The notes under the pieces: model-generated | Told to the model about the DNA's origin: nothing | Databases searched by the model: none | What the model saw: the letters and a program-made list of their open reading frames with translations, nothing else | Program-made: the position numbers and the translations under genes | Sequence record: KX397373.1 | Strand: one strand, 5' to 3' | Length of the DNA stretch: 64,000 nucleotides | In this document: one piece after another, positions 4,837 to 64,000 of the stretch | Layout: every line of letters starts with the position of its first letter | How positions within the stretch are numbered: the first letter of the stretch is position 1

Positions 4837-5571
4837 ATGAAGCGAGTCGTGAGTGAGTCACTCACGCTCCACGCACAGAGCCTGATTAAGTGTGTGGAGA
4901 AGTATGGGTGGGATTCATGGTTAAGCCATTTACGCCTGATGGACGATACCGTCGAGCGTGATTGGGACAAACTGGAAGCAGTGGGTGCTGAGGCTGCTCG
5001 CGACGTTGTGGCTGAACTGGTAACGGATACCATTGCTCGATACAACGCCCGTTGCGATGAACCCATTCCCAAAACTGTACCGCCCCAGATTCCGGCATTG
5101 CCAACCGTTGACCGGCAAGCGTGCCGTATCTGGACGATGGAGGAGTTGTACGACGAACACATCCGGATGCTTAAGCCGGACGTGTTAATCACCGGAGCAT
5201 TGAACTGGTACCTCACCCGTTTCTGGTCTGAACTGTGCAATATCGGCAACGACTGGGACAACGACCCGCAGCTTATCTGGTACGATCGCCAGCATTTCCA
5301 TGAATCACTGAAAAGCGGCACAATTTGCCCGCTGTACGTCATTACCAGCCCGCAACAGCTGCACTTCATTACCGAGGCGGATACCTACGGTGGGTTGGTT
5401 GAGGCGGTTGCTGAGAAACCGATGGGGTTCTTTAAGCAGGGTGAAGCGTGGGTACTGACGGATGACATGGCCGGGTATCTGATTGACCCGGATGATTTGC
5501 ATTCTGATGACGATGACTTTATCGAATATTGGGTGTTAACACCGGAAGCCCTTCAAAAAACTTTCAAATAG
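4837..5571 (+). CDS. Hypothetical protein
   Basis: 244-aa ORF tightly coupled to the RNase H gene. Confidence 0.75.
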   Translation: MKRVVSESLTLHAQSLIKCVEKYGWDSWLSHLRLMDDTVERDWDKLEAVGAEAARDVVAELVTDTIARYNARCDEPIPKTVPPQIPALPTVDRQACRIWTMEELYDEHIRMLKPDVLITGALNWYLTRFWSELCNIGNDWDNDPQLIWYDRQHFHESLKSGTICPLYVITSPQQLHFITEADTYGGLVEAVAEKPMGFFKQGEAWVLTDDMAGYLIDPDDLHSDDDDFIEYWVLTPEALQKTFK

Positions 5572-5580
5572 ATATTATCT
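5555..5580 (+). promoter_or_regulatory. Putative phage early promoter (A-tract then AYAGATATTATC)
   Basis: Same motif recurs at 14250-14275 and 60165-60189, each upstream of a non-structural gene block; resembles phiKZ early consensus TATATTAC. Confidence 0.55.
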
Positions 5581-5611
5581 GTACGACCAGCACCACCTTA
5601 AGGAGTATGTA

Positions 5612-6346
5612 ATGCTAAAGGTACAGGTGCCACAATTGCAGAAAATCAACCCCTCGTTATTCGAGGGGCTTTTCTTTAAATTTTGGCCTCACTATTTCCG
5701 TAATGAATTGCAGGGCAATCTGAACTGGGGACTGCTGCAAAGCGAGTTCTTTTATACCGGTCAGAGTATTGCCATCGCGGTCTATTCCGGAATGCTGCGT
5801 GAGCTGTTCGACGCAGTTAATCTTGGACGGTCGCCTAACTTCCAGCGTCTGGATGTCGATTTAGCGATGCATTTCGACGCCTATGAAGCGGATGATGTCG
5901 GTACGCCATACGGGTTTGAAAACGATGTTGTAGAAAGTCAAATCTACGGGTGGTTAGACAGCTATTCCACCTGGCTGATGTCAAATGAGATGTTAGTGAA
6001 TGTCACGCAGGTTTTCGAGGCAGTGTATAACGACTTGAAAATCATCAAAGAGCAACACGGTCTCCTCGGCTACTGGTACGAGTTTTATACCACGGAATCT
6101 AAACTATGGGAATCCAACTCGTTTGCGATTGGGATTCAAGAAGGGGACTTTGAGGCTATCTATTACGGTCCGTGGCAAGGTCACGCCGGTGATGAGTTCT
6201 ATAACCGGATGGATGTCCATTCGTGGGAGTTCTTTTTATCCGACGGTAAGTTGTATTTGGAAGACGGGGCAACCCAGATTCCGGTCGGTCAGATGACGAC
6301 AATGTGTCGACTGAATGACCTTGTAGGTAAGATGATAAACTTTTAA
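5612..6346 (+). CDS. Hypothetical protein
   Basis: 244-aa ORF with AAGGAG RBS. Confidence 0.75.
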   Translation: MLKVQVPQLQKINPSLFEGLFFKFWPHYFRNELQGNLNWGLLQSEFFYTGQSIAIAVYSGMLRELFDAVNLGRSPNFQRLDVDLAMHFDAYEADDVGTPYGFENDVVESQIYGWLDSYSTWLMSNEMLVNVTQVFEAVYNDLKIIKEQHGLLGYWYEFYTTESKLWESNSFAIGIQEGDFEAIYYGPWQGHAGDEFYNRMDVHSWEFFLSDGKLYLEDGATQIPVGQMTTMCRLNDLVGKMINF

Positions 6347-56365: not shown

Positions 56366-58474
56366 ATGATACTGCGTGAATCTGATTGGGGATACTATCC
56401 GGGTTCGTTACCGGATGACACCACACCCAATAAGAGCTTTAAGAAATTTGCGAGTCTGCTTAACCAGTTAGGCGTGAAACATTACTACGTTCACCTCGCG
56501 CTGCACAACCGTGACCTGCTGGGTGTCGACCCGTTCTCACCAGACTTAACGCTGGAACAGAAAGCGGCAATCATTACCGAGTGTGCTGAGAACCCGTGGT
56601 ACTTCTTCCGCGAATGTGTGCGGGTACCTGCGGATGGTATGAAAAACGGTTTACCCTTTCGTATCGACCGCGGTAACTTTTCGATGTACTGGATTTTCTT
56701 CAACAACATCGATGCGGCAGTAGAGTTCCTCCGTCAGCACGGTAAGACAGTCGGGATGTCCGCGCTGCTGTTGTGGCTGATGCGCTTCCTGGAGAACTCC
56801 CGTACCATTCTCGTGACCAAAGGCCCGGCCCTGCGTGAAGAAACCATCAACAAGATGAAACAGCTTCGCAACGGATTACCGGATTACCTGTGGCCACACC
56901 ATCCGGATGACCCGGATAACCGTGAGACCTTTGCATGTCTCGCGCAGGGCAACAAACTGATTACCGGTATCGGTCAGAACGATGCAGAATCAGCAAACGG
57001 TGTGGGGCGTGGATTAACCGCCGGTCGTCTGTTCGGCGATGAAGGCCCCTTCACCAAAAACATCCACCACATCTTACCTGCGGCACTGGCATCGGGTACG
57101 GCTGCGCGTCGTATCAACGAAGCCGAAGGCGTCCCTTATGGAAACGTCTTCGCCACTACGCCAGGTGACCTCGCCACGGAAGAAGGCGCGTACATGTACG
57201 AGCTAATGACTTCCGGGATTATGTGGGATGAGCGTTACATTGACATTCCTTCGCGTACCCAGCTGATTGACATTATCCGCAAAGGGTCAACCGCGAAGAT
57301 TCCACGTATCATGTTCTACGTGAAGTACAACCACCGACAACTGGGCACCACCGATGAGGAGCTGGCAGACATGATCGCCAACGCCCCAGGTACCCCTGAC
57401 CAGATCCGCCGTGACTTCGGTGGGGAATGGACTACCGGTGGCTTTAACAAACCGTTCTCGGGTGATGACGCGCGTCGCATGAACGCCTCGAGAATGCGTG
57501 CCGTGTACAAGGACATTTCTCCGTCCAACTACGTGACCGACTGGTATTACACCGAAGAAGAGATGATCACCAAGTTACACGATCGCCACATCATCGGTCT
57601 GGATACCTCGGAAGCCGTAGGGCGAGATGCTATCGCAATGTCGATTGTCAACTCTATGAACGGGGAATACGCTGGGAAGCTCACAGTGAACGAAACCAAC
57701 GTCATCGGGTTTGCTATTCACCTGGCAGACTTCATGGTGCGGTATCCGAACACTGTCCTGATTCTGGAACGACGGTCAACGGGTTCTTCGGTCGCGGATG
57801 CTATCATCCTGCAATTGCAGTCGAAGGTACCTGACCTCCACCGTCGCTTGTATGTGAAAGTGACCCAGGATTATGCCCGTACTCATGAGCTCTACAAAGA
57901 GTACCACCGTGGTCCGGTGGGGAGTGCGGAACGCTTCTGGGACAAGTTCCGTAAATACATCGGTTTTTCAACCGACCAGGATAAACGCCGTAAGCTGTAC
58001 GGTGAAGTTTTCACCATGGCGTTACGCCTGACCGCGGACACTTTACGGTCTGGTGAATTAATCGACCAAATCCTTAGTCTGGTTGAACGTAACGGTCGTA
58101 TTGACCACAAAGCGTCCGGGCACGATGACTTGGTTGTCTCTTGGCTTCTGGCGATGTGGCTGATTCTGTTCGGTAATAACTTAGGCCATTACGGCATAAG
58201 CAACAGCCGACTGATGATGCGCAATCGTAATTTGTTGGAGAACAAGGGCGACTTTGACGAAGAGGAACAGGTCGAGGAGGAAGAAAAGCAACAAAAACTG
58301 ATGGGGGAAATCGAGGAGGCTATCCGTTACTCAGCCGGGTTATCCGATCCGGTTCAGCAAATGGCAAGTCGCAATCGGTTGCAATCTCTCATTGCCCAAC
58401 TCAACACTGATACGCGAAATGTCGCGTCGATGGAAAGCTTGAAAGAGCTTATCCAACGGCAGAGGATGAAGTGA
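56366..58474 (+). CDS. terL: Terminase large subunit
   Basis: ENPWYFFRE, Walker A LRQHGKT, Walker B FGDEG, ATTPG coupling motif, nuclease IGLDTSE, ILE, GHDDLV. Confidence 0.93.
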   Translation: MILRESDWGYYPGSLPDDTTPNKSFKKFASLLNQLGVKHYYVHLALHNRDLLGVDPFSPDLTLEQKAAIITECAENPWYFFRECVRVPADGMKNGLPFRIDRGNFSMYWIFFNNIDAAVEFLRQHGKTVGMSALLLWLMRFLENSRTILVTKGPALREETINKMKQLRNGLPDYLWPHHPDDPDNRETFACLAQGNKLITGIGQNDAESANGVGRGLTAGRLFGDEGPFTKNIHHILPAALASGTAARRINEAEGVPYGNVFATTPGDLATEEGAYMYELMTSGIMWDERYIDIPSRTQLIDIIRKGSTAKIPRIMFYVKYNHRQLGTTDEELADMIANAPGTPDQIRRDFGGEWTTGGFNKPFSGDDARRMNASRMRAVYKDISPSNYVTDWYYTEEEMITKLHDRHIIGLDTSEAVGRDAIAMSIVNSMNGEYAGKLTVNETNVIGFAIHLADFMVRYPNTVLILERRSTGSSVADAIILQLQSKVPDLHRRLYVKVTQDYARTHELYKEYHRGPVGSAERFWDKFRKYIGFSTDQDKRRKLYGEVFTMALRLTADTLRSGELIDQILSLVERNGRIDHKASGHDDLVVSWLLAMWLILFGNNLGHYGISNSRLMMRNRNLLENKGDFDEEEQVEEEEKQQKLMGEIEEAIRYSAGLSDPVQQMASRNRLQSLIAQLNTDTRNVASMESLKELIQRQRMK

Positions 58475-60224: not shown

Positions 60225-61358
60225 ATGAAGAAATATGAACGCAAAGCAACGTGGCACAAAGCGCTACGTTCCGGTACGATATCAAAAGACCAGGATGTAA
60301 AGATGTGGGTATTGCCACACGGGGTTATCTGTGAGTTAGCCCGTGTTGGGGGTATGCCGATTCTACGCAACGGCAACTATGACGCCGTCAATTCTTTCCT
60401 GGCGAAAACACTGTCTGATGCGGGCATTGAAAACGAGGTGCTGTTTTATACCACCCGTGTTATCCCGCAGACGTTATCGCGTTGGCTTACACACTGGTTG
60501 TCGACAGACCCCGGTGAAAACGATCCAGAGCTGAGTTCCGTTACCGTTACCACAATGGGACAATATCCGCAGAAACCTTTACCCTTTCAGGTTAACGTGG
60601 TGGAGCCAGTTCTGGTGAAAGCAGGGGCTGTGTTTGAGAACATCAAACAGAAATCCCGTAATAACGCCGTCTCTCAATTTATCGTTGAGGCGAACGGTGT
60701 GCAATACCGACTAGAACCGGTGCGTAACACCACCGGGAAAATCATTGACTGCACAGAGTACGGCTACGTGGTCCGCACACCCACAGGTCACACTTTCCTG
60801 GCAACTATGATCTCTCGTCGCATCCAGTCGCAGCTAAAACATTACAATGTGCGGCCGGACGATCTTATCGGTACCGAAGTTAAGATCGAATATACGATGT
60901 TTACCGAAGGGACTCGACTGTGCAACTTCAAGTCTTCGATAATTTATCGAAGCATTGCCCTGGATAACATGGGCGACTCTTACCCTGCCACATACGATGG
61001 CCCGAACCTCTTTAAGCAATTACCAGGCGGTAGCAATCCAGCGCTCTTGACTGTAACGCGTTGCGGCCGTGCGGATATTGCGCTAAGAGAAGGGACAATT
61101 TATGGCATTGAGCGGGAGTCCGGTGAGACCCTCTTTAGATTTGAACCTGGCGTATCGCATGGTTTGTATGCGGCGCAGTTCGAACACAAAGGGGTGACCG
61201 AAACCTGGCGTTTCGTATCTGAGTTTGCTGTGGATGTTATAGACCCGACCGCATTCGTGGAGAGTGTGGCTACCCAAATCTTTGGGGCAACGGGCTATAG
61301 TCTACAAAGGCTTGGACTGTGTTACGCTGAAACCGAACCACAGTCAATGGAAACTTAA
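60225..61358 (+). CDS. Hypothetical protein, possible degenerate ATP-dependent DNA ligase fold
   Basis: AAGGAG RBS; OB-fold-like segment LIGTEVKIEYTMFTEGTRL; no KxDG motif. Confidence 0.5.
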   Translation: MKKYERKATWHKALRSGTISKDQDVKMWVLPHGVICELARVGGMPILRNGNYDAVNSFLAKTLSDAGIENEVLFYTTRVIPQTLSRWLTHWLSTDPGENDPELSSVTVTTMGQYPQKPLPFQVNVVEPVLVKAGAVFENIKQKSRNNAVSQFIVEANGVQYRLEPVRNTTGKIIDCTEYGYVVRTPTGHTFLATMISRRIQSQLKHYNVRPDDLIGTEVKIEYTMFTEGTRLCNFKSSIIYRSIALDNMGDSYPATYDGPNLFKQLPGGSNPALLTVTRCGRADIALREGTIYGIERESGETLFRFEPGVSHGLYAAQFEHKGVTETWRFVSEFAVDVIDPTAFVESVATQIFGATGYSLQRLGLCYAETEPQSMET

Positions 61359-61368
61359 GGAGCACCCT

Positions 61369-61878
61369 ATGTTTACTGCGCCAACCATGCTCTCTGGTAG
61401 CAGCCTGCGAGTAGCGTGCCAAGATGCACGCCTCATGGAACTCTGCGATCAGAGCATACTTACTGCGATGATGACCCACAACCCTTTAGGTGACTACGGA
61501 AATACCAGCGAGATATTGGCCGTTGCTGCCGTGCTCCGTCGTATTTACGGTCATTTCACAATCGTGGATCTGTGTGACTTTATTGACAACCATACCGATT
61601 TAGCGAAAGGGTTGGTGGCGTTAACACAAGACGGTGTATCAAGCTTTGATAGCGGCATCGGCAACTTTTTGGATATTGGCTCGGGCTTTGACTCGGGGAT
61701 GATGTTTATCACCCGTGAACGCTATGTGGCCGTTTGGGAATTCATGGCGAAGATGGGCGTGAACGTGCCGTCTAAGATCATGTACTACCCGACTCACGAT
61801 TTGAATATCTTCGGTGAGCCAGGACTCTGGGTAAAACCCGTGCACCTGGGACTTGACGGACTGACCGTCAAGTGTTAA
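61369..61878 (+). CDS. Hypothetical protein
   Basis: AAGGAG RBS before ATG 61369. Confidence 0.7.
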   Translation: MFTAPTMLSGSSLRVACQDARLMELCDQSILTAMMTHNPLGDYGNTSEILAVAAVLRRIYGHFTIVDLCDFIDNHTDLAKGLVALTQDGVSSFDSGIGNFLDIGSGFDSGMMFITRERYVAVWEFMAKMGVNVPSKIMYYPTHDLNIFGEPGLWVKPVHLGLDGLTVKC

Positions 61879-61888
61879 GTATCCAACG

Positions 61889-61926
61889 CGCACTCTCTTC
61901 GGGGGGTGCGCAACACTTTTTTATTT
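61889..61926 (+). terminator. Intrinsic terminator
   Basis: CGCACTCTC-TTCG-GGGGGTGCG followed by a T-rich tail. Confidence 0.75.
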
Positions 61927-61943
61927 CCTAAAGGATAACGAGT

Positions 61944-62492
61944 ATGTTCCAATTGTTTAAAGACGTGTTCTCCCTGACCTCGACCCCGCACATCTCCCTG
62001 GCAGAGAACTGGCAGGAGGACATCGCCAACCAAATGCGTGACCTGGTACGTACTGACCGCATGGAGAATCGTTACGTGGTGTGGTACAAGGACGACAAGC
62101 CGTATTTCATCTTTGTGGTCGCGCCTGCCGAGGATCGCCATTACCTCTACGTCAAAGAGCACCTCAGTGACGAAATCGTCAACGGGCTACGCGGTGCATT
62201 AAGCGAAGAGGGGGATGTGAGCAAATACATCCTGTGCAGCGATTTAAGGACACCAATCGAATTAGCGGCGGCAACGTTCCAGGGAGTGGCTATCGACATC
62301 CCAGGGAGCGTTACAGACGACGTAATCGTGCAATTCATCGGAAGCGCCGGGGAGGAGGTTGTCCGTCATCGGAAAACGCTGGCCCCTGGTCTGTCACCGG
62401 TGTTGTTCCTGTCGGGTAATTTCACTGTCGAGGACATTGCCGAACTTGAACAAGCGGGTTTCAAGTTGGGTAATCTTCTGTACAAATTTTAA
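61944..62492 (+). CDS. Hypothetical protein
   Basis: 182 aa, AAGGA RBS. Confidence 0.75.
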   Translation: MFQLFKDVFSLTSTPHISLAENWQEDIANQMRDLVRTDRMENRYVVWYKDDKPYFIFVVAPAEDRHYLYVKEHLSDEIVNGLRGALSEEGDVSKYILCSDLRTPIELAAATFQGVAIDIPGSVTDDVIVQFIGSAGEEVVRHRKTLAPGLSPVLFLSGNFTVEDIAELEQAGFKLGNLLYKF

Positions 62493-62498
62493 CCAATT

Positions 62499-62528
62499 GG
62501 GTGCCTTCGGGTGCCCTTTTATTTTTTT
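62499..62528 (+). terminator. Intrinsic terminator
   Basis: GGGTGCC-TTCG-GGTGCCC followed by a T-rich tail. Confidence 0.85.
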
Positions 62529-62536
62529 GCCCTGCT

Positions 62537-62571
62537 CACTTTTTAACCAATGTTTGTACACTTTTTAACCA
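62537..62571 (+). repeat. 13-bp direct repeat CACTTTTTAACCA, two copies, 22-bp period
   Basis: Copies at 62537-62549 and 62559-62571; partial TTTTAACCAA at 62487. Confidence 0.8.
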
Positions 62572-62771
62572 GCGCCAAAAAGCCCCCTGAAAAGCTCTCT
62601 GAGGAGATTTACTCTGACCCGGTACGTTTGGGTGCCTGCCCCCCTTTCGTCGCCGTGACGTGGCTTACAGGACGCGTGCGCCCCATCCCCGGTTCGCCGA
62701 GCCGACCGCCGCGACGATCAAAATATCATGTACGCTTCGCGTTGGAATGGATTGGGAGACTGGATCGATTT

Positions 62772-63107
62772 GTAATTCGCATCTCTGCGAATTACCTTCG
62801 AGTGCTTTTCCTGGCTTACTGCCTATCCGGCCCTTAAGGCCGGGATTATTTAAAAATTTCCTTTTTAAATTAGTGACTTACGTCACTCACTGATTTCAGG
62901 TTTTGATCTTCGTCGGATCTCTTTCATTATACGCGCGTACGCGCACACCCGTATCCTCCAGGATCTTTTAATATATATTTATTATTAATATTATTAATAT
63001 CTTTAGATATTATTAAATATATTAAAATATATTAATATCTTTAGATATATTTAAAAGATCTTAAAACGCGTGGGTGTGCGCGTGATCCTTATTACGAGAT
63101 CGTGATC
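62772..63107. other. Origin-like element: palindrome series, ~94% AT core, inverted repeats, GATC cluster
   Basis: 62966-63066 has 6 G/C in 101 nt; flanked by ACGCGCACACCC/GGGTGTGCGCGT and GATCTTTTAA/TTAAAAGATC inverted repeats; 19-bp direct repeat inside. Confidence 0.55.
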
Positions 63108-63159
63108 GGGGGGAGGGGAGGAATTATTTTTTACAAGACTTCCCAGTAGTGTGACAAGT

Positions 63160-64000
63160 TGACCCCGATGGCATTACGGGAAAGCCACTCTCGACCGAGG
63201 ATGAGTCTCAGTGTAGCGTGTGTGCGAAATGGGAGTGGCGCTTTTTCAACGAACGAATCTTACAGGCTGGTAGGATGGAAGGGGAAACCTAGCGACCCTC
63301 AGAGTCGCAAACTGCTGTGTGTTGGCTCCGCCCCTGGGGTAAAACCTCGGGGCGATTTTTTTTCTCCCGAAATCGAATTACGAGTTTGTTTAGTTATATG
63401 CGAATAGTTTCCTCGAACGTCACTGCTTGGGGATAGCTGATTTTCTGCGGATGCAGAGCTCCACCCTGGTCTTCACCAGCCAGGGTGCTTTTTCGAGAAT
63501 TCCTATCGTGGGAGCCCTCGAGAAAGCAAATCGCTCAGCCTAACACTGTTGGTTTGTTTAGTATGTTCGGCAAAAAGTGTTTCGCGACACTTCGAACGGG
63601 TGGTTCCGAGCGGGGAAACTTTGAACCACCCACCCATTCAGGTATCGGCTTTTTGCAATCGGCCTTTGGTCGTGATGCATGACGCTTTCACCGTCACACA
63701 TGTGCCGGTACCGTGGCAGCTCCAGATGCGGGACTTCGAGTATACGCCGTTGAACTTACCTCCGGTAGTCCTCGTCGTTCCCGCCCTGGGGTGCGGCCAA
63801 TCCGAATTCGGCGTTGCGTCGATAGGGGTCTGCGTGTAGAACCGCAGGCTTGGGGTTACTCCCGAAGGAGAGTGGTCCATATCTTGGCGGCTCGGGAAGA
63901 CGAGAGGGGTGGATGTCCTCGTTGGGAAACGACGATGTCTGGCTGAATAAAATTTACAGGTTAGCCGTTGGGTATGTTAAACAACCCACGGAGAACTGCA
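63160..64000 (+). ncRNA. Candidate structured non-coding RNA region, family unidentified, runs to the window edge
   Basis: No RBS-supported ORF; more than 10 stems, several with G-U pairs or GAAA-type loops; TTAGTATG motif at 63558. Confidence 0.4.

Follow-up and report, generated by a model that had tools for sequence, protein, structure and literature searches.

Setting of the element in the Stratton genome

The window analysed here (the whole stretch of 64,000 nucleotides) is the last 64 kb of the genome of Erwinia phage vB_EamM_Stratton, with which it is identical by sequence comparison (KX397373.1; adding 179,953 to a window position gives the record position). Stratton is an SPN3US-like, nucleus-forming jumbo phage of the genus Erskinevirus, and its whole genome of 243,953 bp was rebuilt from the public record to judge chance. 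The element described below lies within a gene-free gap, the largest of this genome, which opens after the terminator of gp285 and extends beyond the window end (Table 1). The gap measures approximately 1.5 kb in Stratton and 1.8 kb in SaP7; in relatives in which the region is internal, it spans approximately 1.8 kb and is followed by a gene for an HslV-like peptidase and a tRNA cluster. The gene for the large terminase lies 4.4 kb upstream of the element, and the intervening early operon gp283–gp285 is driven by its own early-type promoter.

Three small open reading frames, gp286, gp287 and gp288, are annotated within the gap, and none of them has a codon-position bias. Substitutions between Stratton and Asesino fall evenly on the first, second and third codon positions in each of the three frames (17/12/14, 14/13/18 and 5/10/9). 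All three frames contain in-frame stops in SaP7 (eight of them in the gp286 frame), and two are also interrupted in Asesino. These annotations look spurious, and the three frames are not coding. Every feature that a preliminary description of this DNA had listed here, from the direct and inverted repeats to the AT-rich core and the GATC cluster, was recovered by inspection of the sequence, repeat and GATC searches and a script, and exceeds chance.

Table 1 Features of the Stratton control region and its surroundings, in window coordinates
Feature	Position	Strand	Details
Large terminase gene	56366–58474		
Class-A (early-type) promoter	60179		drives gp283–gp285
gp283	60225–61358	+	phrog_8136
TTTTAACCA, three copies	62487–62571	+	start-to-start distances 54 and 22 bp; last copy preceded by TGTACAC
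Intrinsic terminator	62499–62530	+	GC hairpin, then T run; closes early operon gp283–gp285; left border of control region
13-bp direct repeat	62537–62549 and 62559–62571		22 bp apart
gp286 (annotated)	62550–62837		
Candidate left non-coding RNA, conserved structured segment	62572–62846	+	hairpins 62617–62633, H1 and terminator-like H2
Inverted repeat H1	62772–62795		
Inverted repeat H2	62827–62843		
Palindrome ladder, H3 and H4	62848–62887		H3 AT-only; H4 a different GC-rich stem in each genus
Inverted repeat H3	62848–62870		
Inverted repeat H4	62872–62887		
Left GATC pair	62905–62919		sites 11 bp apart
GATC sites	62905, 62916, 62962, 63057, 63084, 63098, 63104		
Left box	62920–62975		alternating purine–pyrimidine tract, then CAGGATCTTTT block
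Alternating purine–pyrimidine tract	62928–62948		21 nt, GC-rich
Perfect palindrome	62930–62939		10 bp
Outer inverted pair	62939–62950 with 63072–63083		
Inner inverted pair	62962–62971 with 63051–63060		
AT core, candidate DNA-unwinding element	62966–63066		101 nt with 6 G/C
19-bp repeat in core	starts 62992 and 63030		
Small hairpins in core	62997–63010 and 63035–63048		G/C at stem
Right box	63066–63107		GC-rich tract complementary to left box, then block with GATC 63084, 63098 and 63104
G-run	63108–63121	+	between right box and promoter
Class-B phage promoter	63124–63153	+	fires rightward, away from core; 45 bp right of right box
Candidate right non-coding RNA	63153–63368	+	approximately 215 nt; strong intrinsic terminator 63332–63368
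gp287 (annotated)	63222–63407		
gp288 (annotated)	63549–63839		

Anatomy of the element

The body of the element is made up of an AT core held between a left and a right box. No other 100 bp in the 244-kb genome is as rich in AT as the core, which reaches 94% (next-ranking segment, 75%). Two nested inverted pairs share a common centre near 63011. Folded as single-stranded DNA, the segment 62925–63095 gives a 145-nt hairpin (62939–63083) of −30.4 kcal/mol, against −9.7 ± 2.5 kcal/mol for shuffled sequences (z = −8.2), and the ladder to its left (62760–62900), folded in the same form, gives four stem-loops (z = −7.9). The alternating purine–pyrimidine tract of the left box is prone to form Z-DNA and is the longest in the genome; because simulated genomes reach runs of 16–21 nt, only its conservation counts as evidence.

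GATC is depleted approximately threefold in the Stratton genome, with 349 sites against 950–1,180 expected. The seven sites of the element lie within 203 bp, against 0.29 expected (Poisson probability 3e-8, approximately 1e-5 after scanning), and constitute the densest GATC cluster of the genome; the next best elsewhere has 4 per 203 bp (5 per 250 bp).

At the left margin, the central 9-mer of the 13-bp direct repeat has three copies in the genome, all confined to the 85 bp of 62487–62571. The TTTTAACCA repeats are candidate protein-binding repeats or a candidate promoter for the left RNA. Iteron-type origins have several direct repeats in helical phase beside an AT-rich region; the three copies here are unique to this locus in Stratton and lie 400 nt from the core. 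Relatives carry one or two copies, with further ones elsewhere in the SPN3US and Machina genomes, and the motif with a TGTACAC-like prefix (TGTAYRY) is found 400–630 nt left of the core in six of nine genomes.

Conservation across relatives

The preliminary description had named conservation among relatives as a check, and the element is indeed kept in four genera as a single-copy, non-coding feature. It occurs once per genome in Erskinevirus, Seoulvirus, Machinavirus and Wellingtonvirus, as well as in one metagenomic phage, and the hosts of the phages carrying it are Erwinia, Salmonella, Escherichia and Proteus. The left-box core around CAGGATCTTTT is invariant in all ten relatives examined; the surrounding block (62953–62969) has a single variable base and carries the sole GATC present in every relative. 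The right-box block, with two or three GATC, is kept in nine of the ten and lost in pEa_SNUABM_4. Between the boxes lies a stretch of 76–120 nt that is variable in sequence and has an AT content of approximately 80% or more.

Secondary structure is kept where sequence is not. The stems of the core hairpins and of the four ladder hairpins differ by genus, and pairing is always maintained through compensatory changes; hairpins of the ladder and left segment, with differing stems, were found in nine genomes. An alternating tract of 15–23 nt, GC-rich and of differing sequence, directly adjoins the left box on its left side in nine of ten relatives. Long-range dyad symmetry was found to be restricted to Erskinevirus and SPN3US-type phages. 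The G-run beyond the right box is present in Asesino, in Machina and in a metagenomic locus from IMG/VR (L020, 11 G), and is weak in SPN3US-type phages.

Whole genomes were compared for Stratton, SPN3US, Machina and pEa_SNUABM_11, representing the four genera. The left-box anchor is unique in each of them, GATC is depleted 2.5–3.8 fold genome-wide, and nowhere in the four is GATC clustered as densely as at the element. By AT content, the core takes first place among 100-bp segments in three of the genomes (Stratton, SPN3US and Machina); in pEa_SNUABM_11 it is third. The GATC layout is also conserved: counted from the anchor, two sites lie at about −200 to −270, one invariant site lies at the anchor itself and three or four lie on the right at +95 to +150, with one to three more at about −55 to −90 in 8/10 relatives. 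On this evidence selection clearly acts on the element as a cis-acting, single-copy stretch of DNA, which has candidate RNA units on its flanks.

The long hairpin and its neighbourhood could instead mark a structural DNA site, either a cruciform and recombination hotspot that would seed recombination-dependent replication or a tether in the early vesicle or phage nucleus. The 145-nt imperfect palindrome (z = −8.2), the adjoining Z-prone tract and the uniqueness of the element in the genome would suit such a site; the palindrome, however, is not kept beyond two genera, and alternating runs of the observed length arise in simulated genomes. We know of no binding partner or precedent for such a site, and consider this explanation very improbable.

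More distantly, Pseudomonas phage EL retains the gene order terminase, gap, HslV-like gene. Within the 12-kb locus, AT content peaks in its syntenic gap (locus 5350–6001), in a stretch with 68 A/T in 80 bp, a modest value. There is no GATC cluster, the gap itself contains no GATC, and GATC is not depleted in EL. If the element is an origin, its GATC layer would be specific to the clade.

In the public records of SPFM10 and SPFM12 the region is present as 60-nt blocks in reversed order. Two-piece matches to these records had suggested that the core might be a flip-flop segment; this was rejected, as the reversed blocks are a file-handling artefact. None of the public sequencing runs searched contains this genome, the best sharing about a tenth or less of the sampled words; approximately 20 unrelated runs (wetland, phyllosphere and several organisms) each share about a tenth of the words sampled from window positions 61000–64000.

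Flanking transcription signals and candidate RNAs

Two strand-specific promoter-like families are found in the genome. Class A has the AT-rich consensus GATAGATATTATC followed by G approximately 5 nt later. Its 8-mer core, AGATATTA, is matched 15 times on the plus strand of Stratton, and in nine of these cases the 12-nt consensus is complete; a search of the minus strand of the genome for the full consensus gave none. A 10-nt core of the motif has approximately ten matches in each of three relatives, all on the plus strand, and the motif is found upstream of RNA-polymerase subunit genes. Class A agrees with what has been published on the early promoters of the virion polymerase in this phage family (PMC5312081). 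Class B has the form TTTAC-N15-T(A/G)TG and resembles the TATG promoters of the non-virion polymerase. Its loose pattern has 25 matches on the plus strand against 6 on the minus strand, of which approximately 12–15 are clearly intergenic, often directly after terminators; examples are the promoter beside the core and another at 63953.

The class-B promoter beside the core occupies the same place in eight of nine relatives, with altered spacing in the ninth. It precedes the candidate right RNA, and a T run follows approximately 200 nt past the predicted start in five of eight relatives. On the other side, the conserved motif at 62555–62571 precedes a structured non-coding stretch of approximately 270 nt that ends at a terminator-like hairpin. 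In a seven-genome alignment of this left segment, 12 of 31 predicted pairs keep their pairing via changes on both sides, and two GATC sites, at 62716 and 62763, are conserved. With candidate RNA units on both flanks, the core lies in a spacer of approximately 300 nt between them. A search of the region against Rfam gave no family at gathering score; the sub-threshold matches were to microRNA precursors only, because of the long hairpin on both strands. Further to the right (63380–64000), more promoter-like TATG motifs and terminators extend up to the first gene, with no Rfam match.

The Stratton core itself includes a 10-nt partial class-A match (63004, plus strand). The core as an early promoter for the virion polymerase was considered and rejected: neither the conserved C nor the start G is present in the match, and its sequence differs in phages of the SPN3US and Machina types. 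Since the match is partial and not conserved, the core is not read as a promoter.

This arrangement could also be explained by methylation-sensitive control of transcription between two non-coding RNA genes, with a regulator at the boxes whose access would depend on GATC methylation, as at Mu mom or at pap; the AT core would then be an upstream or insulating element, and the output the timing of the flanking RNAs. The conserved promoter 45 bp right of the right box would fit such a switch, as would the terminator-like hairpin and conserved structured segment on the left, the conserved GATC in boxes adjoining the promoter and, in Stratton, the early-promoter-core match inside the core, although the last of these is the non-conserved match rejected above. 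Other listed class-B promoter contexts in Stratton, however, have no such upstream element, and a regulator site leaves a 100-bp core of genome-extreme AT content in three genera unexplained. We regard a transcription switch as unlikely.

Dam methylase, neighbouring proteins and packaging

Stratton encodes a Dam-family methylase, gp123 (record positions 100263–101081; TIGR00571, 257 bits), and a member of this family is encoded in all four relatives checked. The methylase has been kept in four genera while GATC was shed genome-wide.

Searches of Pfam, PHROGs, Atlas and PDB sequences found no function for gp282–gp285. The structure model of gp283, a conserved early-operon protein, has a mean pLDDT of 86 and an ATP-dependent DNA-ligase fold with nucleotidyltransferase and OB domains. 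In Foldseek, its matches include the ligases of Chlorella virus, T4 and ASFV (E = 2e-6) as well as the ligase-like domain of the poxvirus polymerase cofactors (A20/A22). The KxDG active-site motif of ligases is absent from gp283, and K7 and K236 are its only invariant lysines, for which reason gp283 may be a non-catalytic part of the replisome. The model of gp285 gave no structural match and no small-terminase-like fold.

The element could alternatively be a P1-type pac site, at which the terminase or a partner would bind methylated GATC boxes, the first headful cut would fall in the AT core and Dam would set the timing. The P1 pac site spans 161 bp and has 4 + 3 GATC hexamers around the cleavage site, regulated by methylation (PMC10028697). 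Its layout is paralleled here by seven GATC within approximately 200 bp, split three and four between the left and right sides of a core of approximately 95 bp, by a phage-encoded Dam and by the terminase neighbourhood, where the order terminase, gap, HslV is kept even in EL. The element differs from P1 pac in lying outside the terminase gene and in having a longer and far more AT-rich core. The P1 hexamer TGATCA/G is fitted by one of the seven sites, that at 63103, and the IHF site WATCAANNNNTTR has no match in 62900–63110, even with one mismatch. In addition, the terminase resembles that of T4, and packaging is assumed in the field to proceed by headfuls without regard to sequence (PMC5694885; PMC6256631); gp285 has no fold like that of a small terminase, and packaging has no need for a 100-bp stretch of 94% AT.

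Several deposited genomes begin inside or beside the core, which would fit a pac site. Record starts were, however, rejected as physical ends: base 1 of the Erwinia phage records was set by alignment to the family, and the SPN3US start is an assembly break. Compared with SaP7, the SPN3US record is missing approximately 65 nt at its end/start junction (hairpin H2 and part of H3), and its base 1 is thus read as an assembly break inside the control region. AT-rich hairpins often break short-read assemblies. We regard a pac site as an unlikely explanation.

Strand asymmetry

Raw cumulative GC skew follows gene orientation and was discarded as a test of the origin. Skew was instead modelled per gene as the sum of a gene-strand term and a two-replichore term, and the switch point was scanned. 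Stratton has its switch at a distance of 4.9 kb (whole genes, p = 0.045; third positions, 0.2), and in SPN3US it lies 3.3–6.9 kb from the element, with 0 of 200 permutations reaching the fit (p < 0.005 by both measures); in both genomes the fitted switch near the element is the one to a G-rich leading strand. The switch lies 87 kb from the element in Machina (p = 0.035 for whole genes and 0.46 for third positions) and 71–85 kb from it in pEa_SNUABM_11, where it is not significant. Because gene order is shared between Stratton and SPN3US, the composition of gene classes could mimic their agreement. The skew that the preliminary description had put forward as a check points to the neighbourhood of the element in Stratton and SPN3US, the signal being absent in Machina and pEa_SNUABM_11, and its backing for an origin is weak and mixed.

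A candidate replication origin

We tentatively read 62920–63107, together with its flanks (62487–63368), as the origin from which SPN3US-like, nucleus-forming jumbo phages replicate, or as the main one that they use early, an assignment that is possible rather than probable. The preliminary description had offered an origin, a packaging site or an anchor to the phage nucleus; a selected cis element in which GATC is kept was borne out, but the data do not single out one of the three. Judged from sequence, an origin to which Dam control is coupled requires the fewest assumptions, and the anatomy fits an origin best. Several features count for it: the extreme AT content, the GATC density, the phage Dam, the pattern of conserved boxes and variable core, the single-copy non-coding locus, the promoter firing away from the core and the DNA-ligase-fold protein in the adjacent early operon. 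The literature searched also holds no competing claim of an origin for the phage family. Counted against it are the skew signal missing in Machina and pEa_SNUABM_11 and not significant at third positions in Stratton, and the lack of an initiator among gp285 (no structural match) and gp283 (no ligase active-site motif). The dyad in two groups only and the TTTTAACCA repeats, which are not exclusive to the locus in SPN3US and Machina, also weigh against an origin, and jumbo phages may rely largely on recombination-dependent replication.

From this arrangement we infer a possible course of initiation comprising initiator binding, unwinding, methylation control and priming. A phage-encoded initiator would bind the left box and the near-invariant right box, and the core of approximately 100 bp and 94% AT between them would melt. 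Negative supercoiling would aid the melting: the class-B promoter fires away from the core, and would therefore leave negative supercoiling behind it, to which both the alternating purine–pyrimidine tract and the AT-rich palindrome may respond. The core hairpins would form upon strand separation and may mark the loading point of primase or helicase. The GATC cluster and the phage Dam would couple firing to the methylation state, as at oriC and P1 oriR; since host proteins are presumably kept out of the phage nucleus, this coupling would require a Dam encoded by the phage itself. The fuller proposal of a self-contained, methylation-clocked origin, combining an initiator of the phage, an unwinding core of 100 bp and flanks that sense supercoiling with a phage Dam in place of the excluded host enzyme, is more doubtful than the assignment as an origin.

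The nucleus, spindle and RNA polymerases of phiKZ-like phages have been studied intensively. In the literature searched we found no origin or packaging signal defined for any phiKZ-like nucleus-forming phage, in agreement with the preliminary description, which knew of no defined origin for this group, and no origin, pac-site or methylation data for SPN3US-like phages. A single, sharply delimited and conserved cis element offers a concrete target. If it is an origin, it would be the first defined for the phage family and would reveal the way in which replication begins where host initiators have no access. The retention of Dam despite the purge of GATC elsewhere would then be explained, and the element could serve as a starting point for vectors that can replicate or be packaged inside the phage nucleus. 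If it is instead a pac site, the assumption of sequence-independent packaging in the family would be overturned.

Comparison with known replication origins

By analogy only, the candidate origin recalls herpesvirus origins of the oriL/oriS type, which, as is well established, are dyad-symmetric and non-coding, with an AT-rich centre, inverted GC-containing boxes and a cruciform-prone palindrome. The Stratton dyad differs in being imperfect and limited to two genera, its flanking units are co-directional rather than divergent, and there is no homologous origin-binding protein.

Origins composed of a promoter and an unwinding element are established for T4 (oriF/oriG) and T7. Stratton shares with these phages its own RNA polymerases and phage promoters combined with an AT-rich tract in a non-coding region, and the G-run beyond the core could stabilize an RNA–DNA hybrid. 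In contrast to these systems, transcription from the clear promoter of the Stratton element would start downstream of the core and lead away from it, and the candidate upstream promoter at 62555–62571 is 400 nt off, with a terminator-like hairpin between.

The likeness to enterobacterial oriC drawn in the preliminary description extends to the AT-rich core and the GATC density but not to DnaA boxes, which are absent: a search of 62480–63200 for TTWTNCACA gave no cluster and one match with one mismatch, inside the promoter T-run. Matches to the oriC 13-mer (GATCTnTTnTTTT) with two mismatches start with GATC at 62916 and 62962, and a further one, without GATC, lies in the upstream terminator at 62513; there are 69 such matches genome-wide. 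The flanks of the element (62880–63006 and 63043–63160) have no sequence similarity to E. coli genomes and plasmids. The host initiator presumably has no access to the phage nucleus, so that initiation would have to rely on a phage protein. The oriC-type combination of an AT-rich unwinding element and a dense GATC cluster is replicated in four genomes. As at oriC and P1 oriR, an AT-rich region that would unwind lies beside conserved boxes with dense, conserved GATC and a Dam methylase available, and, as with gidA at oriC, the neighbouring promoter fires away from it.
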